Positions 51,201-58,183 of a stretch of DNA of 64,000 nucleotides are shown in pieces. Both the position numbers and the translations under genes were made by a program. Origin of the DNA: Podarcis melisellensis. Lineage: Eukaryota. Within the stretch, counting starts at the first letter, position 1. Each line of letters begins with the position of its first letter. The stretch lies in assembly GCA_964234715.1 (NCBI GenBank), contig OZ174285.1. One strand, written 5' to 3'. The notes under the pieces were generated by a model. The model had not been told where the DNA came from. It saw only the letters and a program-made list of their open reading frames with translations, and ran no database searches.

Positions 51201-51462
51201 AGACTATGGCTCATCATACCTGTGTCACCTTCCTCACACCTCAGGTAGACAAATATTGTCATGTGGAAGAGCCACAGAGTGGAGTCCTCCTCTGTTACCT
51301 GGGCTCCAGATTTTACAGTATAGGAAGGAACTCTGTAGCAGCAGCATCTGTACTATGAGGGGTATCAGGTGAAGGAGTCTTGAGAGACAGTAAGTTACCA
51401 ATTTATGATAAAATGGCAAGACTTAATATGAGCTAACCTACAACAGAGCAGTAAGGAATTAC

Positions 51463-51643
51463 CAGCATAGAAGTCTCTGCCTTTGCTTTCATTTATTGTT
51501 ATTGTTAATCCATCCTCAGCAAACTGAATTATTCCATGGGGATCATCATTCTTCAAGATTGTTATGTTGACAACTGTGGCATTTCCCAGTTTACTTGGCA
51601 GCTCACCGTGGCTACTGAGAACCACTGAGTAAAATTCATCCAA
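51463..51643 (-). CDS. ADGRV1: ADGRV1 exon ~14 (181 nt)
   Basis: LDEFYSVVLSSHGE...KNDDPHG...SKGRDFYA; G|GTAAT donor. Confidence 0.95.
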
Positions 51644-52112
51644 CTAGAATAGGGAAACCAAATCAGAACAATATGGTCTGGCAACACTCATAGCAATCAA
51701 GAAACCAGTCCAAATTTATCAAACAGCTAGCGTAAAATAAAATTTAGCAAATGTTACCTCTGGATGTGGAAAGTGCAACTCATATTTTAACAGTAGCACA
51801 ACTGCCTATTAGACACAAATGGAAAATGATAAATCTGCCCTCTGTAGATGACTAGTGTTTGAGAGCATGGAATATAGCTTACTCATTTAAACTTACAGAC
51901 ACGTGAAAACAAAAAAGAATCAGGTAACAGAAACATAACATTTCCTCCTCCATCTCAACACAAAGTGGCCATTCTTAGGGTAGCATTTTCAACACTGCAT
52001 AACCCACCAAAAATCCAATCAGTTCAGGGGGATGTTTTAGATTCTAAATGTCAGAAGTGCATCCTTTATTATTCCAAGTTAGGCATGAGGAATTCTTTCT
52101 GCCTCTCTTTAC

Positions 52113-52295
52113 CTCTGGAATCCCATCCATCTTTGTTAGCAACGTAATTTTAATTTCTCTTTCTCCAGGCTTAAACTCCAGGATTCCTGTACTTCCATAG
52201 AACTCGCTGTCTCTTGGTTCTACAGTATAACGTAGAAATTGCTTGATGAGGGCTCCCCTGGACCGTACAATCTGAAGTTCAACAGATTCTCCTTC
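52113..52295 (-). CDS. ADGRV1: ADGRV1 exon ~13 (183 nt)
   Basis: Manual translation EGESVELQIVRSRGALIKQFLRYTVEPRDSEFYGSTGILEFKPGEREIKITLLTKMDGIPE; AAG acceptor after an 88-nt intron. Confidence 0.93.
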
Positions 52296-52383
52296 CTTTA
52301 AAACAAATCAAAAATCCAAAAGACTCAGTATTCTTACTTGGTGTGGTTCCATCATGGAAGGGGTTTAGTTTCTGAGAACTTAC

Positions 52384-52510
52384 TTTTATCCTGTACGGCC
52401 CTCTTGAAGATAAAGAAAATTCAAACACTCCTCCAGGATCATCATTTTCCAGAATAACCACTTCACGGCTAATATAGCCAGATTTCAGGATCTGATTTTC
52501 CACATTCACC
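52384..52510 (-). CDS. ADGRV1: ADGRV1 exon ~12 (127 nt)
   Basis: VNVENQILKSGYISR...RGPYRIK; TCAG acceptor, AAA|GTAAG donor. Confidence 0.95.
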
Positions 52511-53953
52511 CTGAAGAAATAATTCCAAAGATGCTTTTAACCAGCAAGTTAGTTTAGCATTAAACCCACCACCTACAAACATGTTATTCTGAAATACCCC
52601 CCCCCCCACTGAAGGTACATTTGGCCCCATCGCTGGCTCCCTTTCTGGAACAAACACACATTTTATTTGCTAATGGATTGAATATATTATTCACTTTGTT
52701 ATTCTTTTATTATATTGCCTTTGACTGATTATTATTTTTGGCATTCATATTTTTGTATCGTAAAACCACTTTATGAATGAATGTCAAAAAGTGGTATACA
52801 AAAGCTGTACTTAAACAAAGAATGAACAAAGTCTTTCTGCACAGACTATATTTTATTTATATTTGCCTAGATTTTTTTTTTCAAAAAAAGATTAAACGTG
52901 CACACTTCACACAGAGAAAGACAATAAAACACAGTGACATACAAGAGTACTGGATAGTAAGCTTTTAAAAGTACTGCTGGATTTGAAAGCACTGAAGAGC
53001 AGGTTTTAGTGTCCTGCTAACATGTAACAAACTTTCCAATAACATTTGCTATGAACAGTTGTTGAAAGTAATATTTTGTTTCCAACTTCATCTGAGACGA
53101 CATTTTGCCCCTTGATTGTTTCCTGTGCTGCAGATCTACCCAACAAGCAGAGATGATTTCAAGAGAATCCTTTAAAATGGCTTCAATGCAAAGTTTTCTG
53201 TGCATCCACACACTAAACCTGAATCTTATTCTTAACCAAATTCAGTGTTCCTGAAGTGATACTCAGCTTCAGGAACTGAAGTTGTTAACTAATGTTAACT
53301 AATGCTTAAGCTCTTGATTAGTTGCTGGAGCATACAAAGATGCAGATATTATGTTCCTAGGTAATTTGTATTAATTGTTTTTAAATGATCAATGATGAAT
53401 TTAAATTGGCTGCAGCACTAATATGTGCAATTTATTTCAATAAAACCCCAATCTTAAACCTGCTTACATGAAAGTAATTCTCCCTGAACATGGAAGCATT
53501 TACTTCCAAGTCAATGTGCGTAGGGTTGTGATGTATGTTCCCTAAACATTGCAGTGATAACACACAATCTTATTTGAGGATGAAAACAATTTCTGCTTAA
53601 CTCTAATTATGCAGCTCCATTATACCATATTTGGGAGGCCTGATTTCCCAGCGGTGAAATCAGAACAACCAATCTACTGTTCTGCATTATCTTCAAACAT
53701 CAAACACCAAGCCATGCATTCATAACTTTTTATTATTATTCATAGGCCCTACATAAAGGAACGTTTTCAGTCCTCCACCCCATGCTCCCAAATAAAACAG
53801 CAACAGGAAGCATGCATTGCCCAAGGAGGTCCGATAGGCATGGTGCTTCAGAAGGAAAGAAATATTAAAGGAGACACAGTCTTGTCCAGACCAACCACTT
53901 CCAAAACAAAGTGCTGATTCACTGAATACAAAGACACAGCTTGCTGCACTTAC

Positions 53954-53986
53954 CCAAAGTACACGACAAACCTTTCTGTCTCTACC
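53954..53986 (-). CDS. Putative 33-nt in-frame cassette microexon in ADGRV1 intron 11
   Basis: Pyrimidine tract plus GACAG acceptor, TGG|GTAAGT donor, 33 nt, phase 2-2, no stop; adds VETERFVVYFG. No transcript evidence available. Confidence 0.5.
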
Positions 53987-55003
53987 CTGTCAATACAGAG
54001 AGAAATAAGTGGGGGGTAGGAATAAAACCACTGTTTGCCAGATTCTTTGTAGGAGAGTTCTTTAGAGGAAGAAATAAAAAGCGGGGCGGGATAAATTTTT
54101 TTTAAAAAAACCCTGCACCTTTCCAGCACCTAATGTTCACTTTATGGGAATTCTACTTGCTTGGCACTCACTTGTTTGACTAATGCTAGCAAGAGGTTCA
54201 GCAATTCCCACTCATGGGAGATGACCCCATGACCAATTGGGATGTCAAGGACCATTCAAGGCCTTCGCTGCCAGCACTGCTCTAAGAGCCAGCCGCCAAC
54301 TGCCAAGCACTGTGCAGGCATACAGGCTACACAGCAGCTGAGTAAATTTTATTCAGCACCGTCTGTAATTACTCAGTGCTTTTAATTAGACAAAAGAAAC
54401 CCATTTTATTCATTGATGCACAACCCTCCAGGACCTGCCATCCCACTACGCTGCCCAAATAATTGTCTGAGTAGATAAAGAAGGGCAGGGGTTGCCATTG
54501 TTCAGATTTTTGTAATGGGGACATATTTGAAAGGCCTCATTTAGGCAGGAGTTAAAACAGCATGAAGTGTTATTTGTGGCTGCTTTTTCAGTAAATCAAA
54601 CTGTAAGAATGATGTAAGAGGCGAAAGCATTTTCCAAGCCCAACATTTTATCGGCTCGAAACAAATGCTTAACGGTACCAACCACTTGTCAGAAGATATG
54701 GCTGGAAATGGAATAGTGCCTCTGATCCTAACCTAGCATTTTTAATACCCCAGTTACTTTGATTCATTATAAATTGCTGTCTGCCTGTATATCTTAGTTA
54801 TGCAAGCATGTGTGAATGGCATTTGTCCTTGGCAATGTCTGCTCCATAAGCTGCCACTGGAATTCACAGGAGTTCTGCAGAAAAACCTCTCTGTATAGAT
54901 AACCTGTGCTAAGTGTTGTATGCAAAGATGACATAATCCCTTCCCAAAGGGTTCAGCAGGCAGAACAAAGATAAATGCCAGGACTCTAATAGTGTACCAT
55001 AAA

Positions 55004-55282
55004 TAGGGACGTACCTAGGGGTTGGCTAGGTTGGCCCCCGCCAACAGCACAGAATCAGGGGACCACTCAAATCACACCTCCCCCGTCTGGCTCCTAGTGG
55101 CTATGAGCCCACCCGCCTGTCCTCACACTTCCTGGGCCACTCCTTTGCTGCTCTGGGAAGCCGGGTGAGGTGTGCAGGCTCCTCTGGGTACCTTGGTGGA
55201 GGATCCTCCCCAAGGGCACAAGGAATGGGGGGCACCGATACAGCTCCTTGCCAAGGGCGCAAAGAGCCTAGGTACACCTCTG
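55004..55282. mobile_element. hAT-like MITE
   Basis: TIRs AGGGACGTACCTAGG / CCTAGGTACACCTCT; degenerate 8-bp TSD ACCATAAA/AGTATAAA. Confidence 0.72.
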
Positions 55283-56800
55283 AGTATAAATGAGGTTGCC
55301 AAGAGCAAACTAGCGAGTCAAAGCATAAAAACTGGAGGACAGGTTTCAGCACAGCACTAATAAGGAATGTCATTTTCACAAAGGCATTATGAACCACAAA
55401 CTGACTGAAGGGGGAAAGATGACAGGAAAAGAGGCTCAGGGACAGAAAGCTGGTTACAGTACTATATACACCAGGGCCTAAATCCCAAACAGTTAAGCAT
55501 ACCTGACCCCATAGTGAGCTAACCTGTGCTGGATTTAGGCCAAGATTACAATACAAGCATTTTCATATTCTTGATAAGCAATATACATAATGTATATGGT
55601 GTAACCTAGAGTTCTTCTACCTTGGGTTGCCAGATCTTGTTGGATTACATCAACCATCTCTGACCACTGGCTAAGGCATGCCCCTCAACCGCCCCAATTC
55701 CAGGATGAGTGGGACATGCTGGAATTATAGATGCCATCCCAGCAACCTGGTGTTGTGTCTTGAGCTTGGATCCTTGAACAATAGGCAGGTAGGATTCTAG
55801 AAATCAGCAACCTGATTGGCCTATGGGAGCCATCCAATCCGGCTCCAGGAAGGGAGTTTGAATCAGCCTATCACACATGAATCACTCTAGAATGTAGCAC
55901 CTGAGGATCCTTCCCTGAAACTGGCCCCTCCGCCAATTTCCTGTTATCCTGAGGAGCCACACGTTTGCTGATCTAACATCAAATTCTGAACAAATGATTT
56001 GATAAAGTACAATGATTATTTAGTAATATGTACATTAAATGTGATATAGAACCAGATAAATAATATCAGACATAGTGTTAAGGTTGATAAATCTAGTTTT
56101 TAAAAAACAAATCAGCTCTGTTGTCACTTTAATATTTATACCCAGTGCAGAAACTCACCAAGTATAAGAACTAACTGGAAAAGGAAGAGTATAACTTATG
56201 TATGGAAACATGAGCAATACTCTGTATGGAATTAAGTTACATAATACCTGTTGAGGCAGCAGCAAAGAAGTTGAAATATCATAAATGAAATTCAACTCCT
56301 TTTCTTGTGTTAAGTCTCTGAGACAACTTACTATGAAAATCAATCCTATTACTTTTTAATGGTATGGCATTATAAGAACCAGATCATTACAGGCACATTT
56401 TGACAGAAGTATAACTTTACATGAAACGGAAATGGAAATTTAGCATAATTGTGCCTTCAGAGCAATGTTATCTGCCAAAGGAAATGCAGAAACAATTTCA
56501 GCGGACAACCAATATGATAGAGCCATCCGTTTGCATATTACCTATGAGTCAAAGGAATTCTTTAAAAAAAAACAATTTATGGCTCTGATTCAACATATAA
56601 AATGTCATGGATGCATAAGGTGTCTCTGAACATTTACAGAATAATGTAAATGTAAATAATGTAAATAAATTCTACTGTGCTTAAAGGGGCTTACTCAATA
56701 CACCCCACCCCACAAGTAAGCATACAAATGTTAGCCAGTGCATAAAATAATACAATCAGGATATAAGGGTATGTTGTGACAAATTATTGCAGAATAATAC

Positions 56801-57024
56801 CTGTCTAATGACAAAATTAGAGTCTCATTCATTTCTGGGATGTCATCAGCTTTGACAGTAAGGTTGATTGCTGTGTCACTTTGTCCAGATAAAAATACAA
56901 CAGAGCCAGAGAAAGGGCTTATATCATCAATAGTTACAGCTTTTGGATTGAGGCCAGAGGGTATCAGGCTCCAGAAGACAGTAGCTTGTCCATCAGTCCC
57001 ATCTCGTTGCAATGGAATGGAGGT
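56801..57024 (-). CDS. ADGRV1: ADGRV1 exon ~11 (224 nt)
   Basis: TSIPLQRDGTDGQATV...EMNETLILSLD; donor AG|GTAT, phase 2. Confidence 0.95.
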
Positions 57025-58183
57025 CTAGAATGTATACCAAGTTCTGTAAGGTTTTTTTCTTTCTTATTGAATGTACATGCAACTCTAGATGCCAAGCTAC
57101 AGCCAATATCAAATATCTAAAAACACATTTCTGAAATAGTACATAGATTGATTTATTTTTAACTTCTACAGCATTCTGCACCTATGAAATGCATTGAAAG
57201 AATTGTATGGCATCTTTTAAATATTGGTGAGGTGCGTCACAAATTAATGAAACATGAAAATGGGGGGGGGAGAGAAAATCTAAATAACTAAAAAATCAGT
57301 GAAGTTCTCATGATTGGGATGCAGAGTTTTTGTCACGCTCATCTTCCTTTTGAGAGATGTTTGCGAGTAACATTGCTTCCTTTCTTCAAATCATCTCACC
57401 AACAATCTTCACTCCGTAGCCTACCTAGGAGCCCACATTTCAAGACCCAGATGAAGACATCATGAGGTAACCAACCACTCTCATGGTGCTTTTTTCAAAA
57501 GAAAGGAAAGGTGGGCAGCAGGGGAGGCTACAGAGTGCTGGAGGATTGGTTACATGGTAGGAAAGCAGTGGTCAGTGTGGTTCGTTAAGGGAGCTGAGAG
57601 TTGTTAGGAAACCCTTAACAAAGTACAGTTCCCAGGATTCTTTTTGCAGAAAGCCATGACTCTTAAAAGTCGAATAAGAGTACTTCAAATGTGTGGTGTG
57701 GATGTGGCCAAAAACACCACCCCTTTGCCACCTCACAACAAGTAACCCTAAAACCCCACACAGAGCAAAATTCTGAAGTACCCTGAGAATGAGGCAGGAA
57801 AAACAAAGCCTCCACAGGGAACAAAAAAAACCTTTGAGAAATTGGAGGGAACCGTGTTATCTAGTACTTGATTTTACTTGGAGTTAGGAAAATATAACTT
57901 TTATTACAACTATATGACCCTTACCTCTGAGCAGCATCTTCATAGGTTGCAAGGAACAGTGACATTTCAATTTAACTGTGATTCAGAGTTGTTAAGATTC
58001 TTTTTCTTCATTACAGAACCATGGTGACAAGGCATGAGGAATATTTTGAATAAGTAAGTGTTGCAAAATAAATTATTTTCCACTAGCTTGCAGAAGTTCG
58101 TGTTAAGTGAAGGCAGACCCTGTACTTTCTCTGAAGAAAATGTGCAGTATGCAAGAACAACGTTTAAAGAAATATTTACTTAC

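Follow-up and report, generated by a model that had tools for sequence, protein, structure and literature searches.

ADGRV1 (VLGR1/GPR98) is the gene behind Usher syndrome 2C and audiogenic seizures. Among regulated short exons, microexons of the SRRM3/4 type have a usual length of 3–27 nt, and TGCATG hexamers located downstream of an exon promote its RBFOX-dependent inclusion in neurons and muscle. Within Calx-beta domains, the cassette exons C–F of NCX1 CBD2 and a 5-residue variant of CALX1 are accommodated in the N-terminal part of the F-G loop, where the alternative segments tune the coupling between domains and leave the Ca2+ sites of their own domain untouched (PMC4746289). For ADGRV1 itself, long reads from human neural retina include exon 39A, a novel 33-bp in-frame exon in intron 39, and the same study reports no exon in intron 11 (PMC12047242). 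Our literature searches found no description of an ADGRV1 exon in intron 11, and ADGRV1 is absent from the 12 top-ranked papers listed for SRRM3, SRRM4 and RBFOX.

The locus described here is a 33-nt stretch in intron 11 of ADGRV1, on the minus strand of a 64,000-nt piece of Podarcis melisellensis DNA (the window), which is highly likely to represent, in this lizard, an ancient cassette exon of the gene that is subject to alternative splicing. It resembles human exon 39A in belonging to the same gene, in its 33-bp length, in keeping the frame and in lying outside the reference transcript; exon 39A, which is alternatively included, is located in intron 39, whereas the lizard cassette is located in intron 11. 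Like the neural and retinal microexons of SRRM3/SRRM4, the cassette is short, frame-preserving and deeply conserved, is flanked by conserved intron and belongs to a gene for a sensory-cell protein; unlike them, it is 33 nt long and, in amniotes, has no UGC near its acceptor. The nearest counterparts are RefSeq isoforms of ADGRV1, which carry an 11-residue insert of identical sequence at the same place, between ...LDR and [VIT][NS][VP]EN. These are automated models from other species, whereas the 15 listed lacertid models are without the exon.

On the minus strand, a pyrimidine tract running into ttgacag is followed by the 33 nt (53986..53954) and then by gtaagtg (Table 1). The exon numbers 11–14 used throughout are the labels of an earlier sequence-only reading of this DNA, whose positions for the acceptor, the exon, the donor, the flanking exons and the TGCATG motifs are correct when read on the minus strand. 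Exon 11 ends in ...LSLDR with the bases TTA GAC AG, in which AG belongs to the Arg codon, and intron 11 is therefore phase 2; exon 12 begins with G GTG AAT. The host intron of the 33-nt unit is thus a phase-2 intron separating two Calx-beta exons. With the cassette spliced in, the protein reads ...L-D-R-VETERFVVYFG-V-N-V-E-N..., with the frame kept and zero stops, in agreement with the in-frame, stop-free 33-nt exon in a phase-2 intron that had been proposed. The exon 11 protein is 98.6% identical to residues 670–743 of Podarcis muralis XP_077792347.1, the exon 12 protein is 100% identical to P. muralis ADGRV1, and the ADGRV1 exons of the window are 98–100% identical to the P. muralis protein. 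A repeat search around the site gave nothing relevant, and the site belongs to no repeat. The ADGRV1 exons covered by the window begin at about residue 400 of the protein and reach the EAR repeats.

Table 1. Positions of the cassette exon, its splice sites, the neighbouring exons and the intronic motifs, numbered from the first letter of the window.
Feature	Position	Strand	Description
Cassette exon, ADGRV1	53954..53986	minus	33 nt; with split codons adds VETERFVVYFG between ...LDR and VNVEN...
Cassette acceptor, pyrimidine tract and CAG	53987..54016	minus	score 6.6 bits; same AG in all 6 aligned sequences (4 lineages)
Cassette donor, GTAAGTGCA	53945..53953	minus	score 8.6 bits; GTAAGTG invariant in 4/4 lineages
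Upstream constitutive exon (exon 11)	56801..57024	minus	224 nt; supported by sequence, frame and spliced RNA of relatives
Downstream constitutive exon (exon 12)	52384..52510	minus	127 nt; spliced RNA contig joints 52294>52383 and 52509>56800
TGCATG, proximal	53811..53816	minus	+138 from donor; aligns near wolverine GCATG
TGCATG, distal	53713..53718	minus	+236 from donor
Conserved intronic block	54180..54420	minus	200–400 nt upstream of cassette; lizard/wolverine similarity

To find the corresponding intron in other vertebrates, the peptide of exon 11 was used in a word search, which retrieved open genomic stretches whose loci were then searched exon by exon; runs of N in the window and in L005 were kept as such. 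The loci were named by their best protein match (L001–L003, birds; L006/L007, a pufferfish-like teleost; L008/L009, another percomorph teleost), and L005 is Gulo gulo (wolverine) by its NCBI record. In wolverine, the same intron contains a 33-nt unit with both splice sites (L005:13077-13109), and the 10-residue translation of L005:13078-13107, lying between exons 11 and 12, is 100% identical to that of the lizard. The cassette peptide of L006/L007 is VETARFIVYFG; L008/L009 were located via DNA similarity (70% over 96 nt), and their aligned unit translates to VQTAHFIVYFG. In each of the six aligned sequences (lizard, wolverine and L006–L009), an AG acceptor precedes a unit of exactly 33 nt, and the donor GTAAGTG follows it. 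Because length, splice sites and reading frame are invariant across the lizard, the wolverine and the two teleost lineages, the exon stands far above chance, and it is this comparison between species that decides in its favour.

The substitutions point in the same direction. The lizard and the wolverine are separated by approximately 300 million years, and their cassettes are identical at 30 of 33 positions (91%), the three differences all being third-position and synonymous (0/0/3 by codon position; 2/1/7 between lizard and L006). The intron sequence at −30 to −200 and +10 to +200 from the cassette is 40–53% identical between the two species. As read from these alignments, the pattern is that of an exon which is translated and on which purifying selection has acted since before the teleost–tetrapod split. 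The bird contigs L001–L003 and the short contig L004 stop short of the orthologous site; for L001, no match was found in 3.6 kb of intron. The two parts into which the cassette divides the host intron are of nearly equal size in the two amniotes: for the lizard (56800–52511) they measure 2814 and 1443 nt, and for the wolverine (L005:10198-14512) about 2879 and 1403 nt.

Public gene models provide the complementary view, of inclusion. A search with the wolverine fragment P0014 led to the full-length ADGRV1 of Mustelus asterias (P0039) and found no protein with the insert among the representative proteins, and a word search on residues 640–840 of P0039 gave a list of 120 representatives that are full-length ADGRV1. 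In this list, four proteins carry ...LDR-VETERFVVYFG-... (Scyliorhinus canicula X3, XP_038661208.1; Engystomops pustulosus X3, XP_071995626.1; Macrotis lagotis X2, XP_074063616.1; and Marmota monax X1, XP_058430567.1), and the direct junction without the insert is present in 98 listed representatives with a readable junction, including all teleost and bird ones. Among cluster members, gene models occur as pairs with and without the exon in Marmota monax (X1, 6317 aa, with; X2, XP_046284435.1, 6306 aa, without), M. marmota, S. canicula (X2 without, six other isoforms with), E. pustulosus and M. lagotis, and the exon is also present in all five listed full-length isoforms of Ictidomys tridecemlineatus and in one protein of Callospermophilus lateralis. 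The 11-residue peptide is identical in the catshark, the frog, the marsupial, the rodents and the lizard translation. Inclusion in these other species is recorded by automated gene models rather than by reads. A word search using the open genomic stretch that holds the exon returned no candidate, which says little as the search is length-limited. The hidden in-frame cassette exon of the sequence-only reading is therefore upheld by isoform pairs in shark, frog, marsupial and rodents together with the conservation described above, and these sequences show its conservation among jawed vertebrates. It is not new, being already part of the public annotation of other species.

The situation in lizards is different. 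None of the 15 listed lacertid ADGRV1 models (Podarcis muralis X1–X3 and X5–X10, three of P. raffonei, and one each of P. lilfordi, Zootoca vivipara and Lacerta agilis, from a cluster of 31 members) contains the cassette, and the lizard copy of the exon appears to be unannotated. For RNA, no run is recorded as such; of six small runs with a tentative RNA label, four, from close relatives including organisms A and B, had their contigs placed on 51350–57100. These runs represent spliced RNA, since the joints 51643>52113 and 52294>52383 fit exon borders exactly. In organism B, a contig of 350 nt (depth 3.8) joins exon 12 straight to exon 11 (52509>56800), corresponding to the skipped form, and an RNA contig spans 56800–57024 in exon 11. 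A contig of 261 nt from organism A, with a depth of 2.9, is colinear with 53749–54007 and runs unspliced across both candidate splice sites; its cassette is identical to that of the window, the relative being too close for this identity to inform. Other low-depth intronic RNA contigs lie at 54315–54673 and 56191–56525. No contig with the exon included was found in the four small runs, in which tissues are unspecified, contigs drop rare forms and 33 nt is hard to place. Neither of the junctions that inclusion would produce, 56801->53986 and 53954->52510, is among the relatives' contigs, which show only the skipped junction and the unspliced contig, a weak negative.

The same runs show other features of this part of the gene. 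Exon 13 (52113–52295, minus strand) is an in-frame exon of 183 nt that some of the organism A RNA lacks, with a depth of 6.8 for the skip joint 51643>52384 versus 19.7 for inclusion, which fits P. muralis isoform X6 (P0308), a model without that exon. The intron between exons 12 and 13 is only 88 nt long (52296–52383), as confirmed by spliced contigs in two species. Within intron 11, the segments 55000–55290 and 55760–55860 attract many RNA contigs from all four runs as partial matches (depth up to 178); these contigs continue into unlike sequence, and the segments, in the G+C-richer part of the intron, look multi-copy and transposon-like.

Splice-site quality by itself does not settle what the 33-nt stretch is. 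Scored with approximate vertebrate matrices, which provide a rough control, the cassette sites (Table 1) equal or beat those of the read-verified neighbours, for which acceptors of exons 11–14 range from 0.95 to 7.2 bits and donors of exons 11–13 from 3.9 to 8.3 bits. Yet AG..GT pairs of 3–51 nt that score at least as high as the cassette on both sides occur 9 times in the sense and 2 times in the antisense orientation of the 64-kb window, and roughly one-fifth of such decoy pairs are expected to be open and in frame. On the lizard sequence by itself, the unit could have been one of these decoys, and a chance pseudo-exon was our initial reading, held as probable on the strength of the decoy counts and the skipped junction and dropped on the cross-species conservation. 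Deep conservation, together with annotated inclusion in other species, refutes an intronic decoy and makes its probability negligible. Splice-site quality could not separate the true exon from about ten decoys of the same window; conservation could. An untranslated element that is conserved and looks like an exon, for instance an enhancer or an RNA structure, would fit the position of the cassette beside a long conserved non-coding block. However, the third-position substitutions fall in precisely the frame of the flanking exons, AG and GTAAGTG are invariant, and isoform models bearing the peptide exist in at least 7 species, so that we regard such an element as very improbable.

A subtler alternative accepts the exon and denies its present use, the lizard copy being a relic of an exon used in other vertebrates and no longer spliced in by lacertids. 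It would explain why the listed lacertid models are without the exon and why the RNA of relatives is only skipped or unspliced. Against this, the lizard peptide equals that of shark and mammals, the frame is open and neither splice site is damaged, whereas 33 nt of intron that had fallen out of use would be expected to decay as the flanks have, to 40–53% identity with wolverine; moreover, the RNA evidence comes from just four small runs of unspecified tissues. Loss of use is accordingly quite unlikely, and the ancient cassette exon is, in our view, probably still used in lacertids.

How inclusion of this cassette exon might be controlled is a separate question. In the sense direction, the two lizard TGCATG hexamers start at 53816 and 53718, and a density of at least two TGCATG per 250 nt is reached at 1.5% of window positions. 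Downstream copies also occur in the other lineages, at +84 in wolverine (plus a GCATG at +125), +256 in L006/L007 and +273 in L008/L009. The two downstream hexamers pointed out before are thus present in the lizard, and every lineage examined has a downstream motif. The hexamer is found within 300 nt 3′ of the exon in 4/4 lineages, versus a base rate of 0.10–0.21 for at least one per 300 nt, and is absent from the available upstream intron (204–400 nt per lineage) in 4/4 lineages. Its positions are not aligned between lineages; homology is possible for the two teleost sites. Taken as sequence evidence, the downstream motifs fit RBFOX-type enhancement, and RBFOX proteins binding downstream UGCAUG may possibly enhance inclusion, a proposal we put forward tentatively and with some doubt.

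The strongest non-coding conservation, in fact, is located not at the TGCATG sites but in the approximately 240-nt block upstream of the cassette. Lizard and wolverine are 68–74% identical per 100 nt in this block (wolverine L005:12660-12925), versus 40–53% in the nearer flanks, and blastn aligns them at 69% over 452 nt (E 6e-36). Rfam gave no match within 53500–54700, and a two-sequence consensus fold of the block is uninformative. Teleost introns are too short to contain the block. As far as the comparison goes, it may be a splicing-control element. An exon that is real and has RBFOX as something other than its main inclusion control is therefore to be considered, with the upstream block, factors of the SRRM3/4, PTBP or NOVA type, or splice-site strength and kinetics alone as candidates. 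The block, 200–400 nt away, outranks the TGCATG sites in conservation, the TGCATG offsets vary by lineage (+84, +138/+236, +256 and +273), and teleosts have a TGC at −5 of the acceptor, as do SRRM4-type exons. But the amniotes, lizard and wolverine, have no such element between pyrimidine tract and AG, within 40 nt of the acceptor, the length of 33 nt exceeds the 3–27 nt class typical of SRRM3/4 targets, and the hexamer recurs downstream and not upstream in all four lineages. On this evidence, control mainly by factors other than RBFOX is a serious contender, falling just short of an even balance.

The effect on the protein can be described more closely. Exon 11 encodes the strands of a Calx-beta repeat up to strand F, and exon 12 supplies what is left of the F-G loop, followed by strand G and the beginning of the Calx-beta repeat that comes next. 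The lizard exon 11 gives a sub-threshold Pfam match to Calx-beta, and the orthologous region of Marmota matches PF03160 with E 1.8e-9. AlphaFold2 was run with a 45-row alignment on the natural Marmota isoforms, P0291:640-900 with the exon and P0317:640-889 without. Both models contain the same two Calx-beta sandwiches (mean pLDDT 82–83). The insert occupies model residues 109–119, after the strand 100–107 and before the last strand, which is 133–139 with the exon and 122–128 without, so that the modelled F-G loop grows from approximately 14 to approximately 25 residues on inclusion. The insert has pLDDT <50, and no strand is predicted in it, low confidence being no proof of disorder. In the models, the insert would sit in the N-terminal part of the F-G loop as a low-confidence extension. 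Pfam and AlphaFold2 thus agree with the Calx-beta context, and with a position right after the acidic DDxxExNE segment, that had been assigned from sequence, whereas the beta-strand-like peptide envisaged there finds no support in the models, which show a low-confidence loop extension.

By these models, the ADGRV1 insert would resemble exons C–F of NCX1 (SLC8A1) CBD2 and Drosophila CALX1.1/1.2, in that it is short, lies in the N-terminal F-G loop and leaves the sandwich intact. The NCX1 and CALX domains sense Ca2+ for an exchanger on the intracellular side, whereas the ADGRV1 repeat is an extracellular part of an adhesion GPCR. By analogy, the insert could alter the coupling of its repeat to the neighbour or bind a partner, which we consider conceivable and rather unlikely.

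In the mechanism that we propose, the near-consensus donor (GTAAGT) and the moderate acceptor would define the exon, which would be skipped in most transcripts and included in a subset; because most transcripts would skip it, canonical models would be without it. Inclusion would insert VETERFVVYFG, with the frame kept, into one Calx-beta repeat (about residues 646–781 of the protein), lengthening the F-G loop from approximately 14 to approximately 25 residues with the beta-sandwich unchanged. A more specific proposal is that the exon and the approximately 240-nt upstream block act as a cell-type switch, by which sensory or neural cells would change the mechanics or the partner binding of one Calx-beta junction; we consider this improbable.

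The lacertid models checked miss a conserved exon, which concerns genome annotation, and a true hidden exon can be picked from raw sequence by a reader. Should hair cells, photoreceptors or neurons use the exon, it would be a coding segment missing from canonical transcripts and passed over by exon-based screens for variants, and if the switch is true, disease variants in an exon absent from canonical transcripts would escape routine Usher 2C screening. To judge from the comparison of sequences, 11 residues that have stayed identical over more than 400 million years must have a function.
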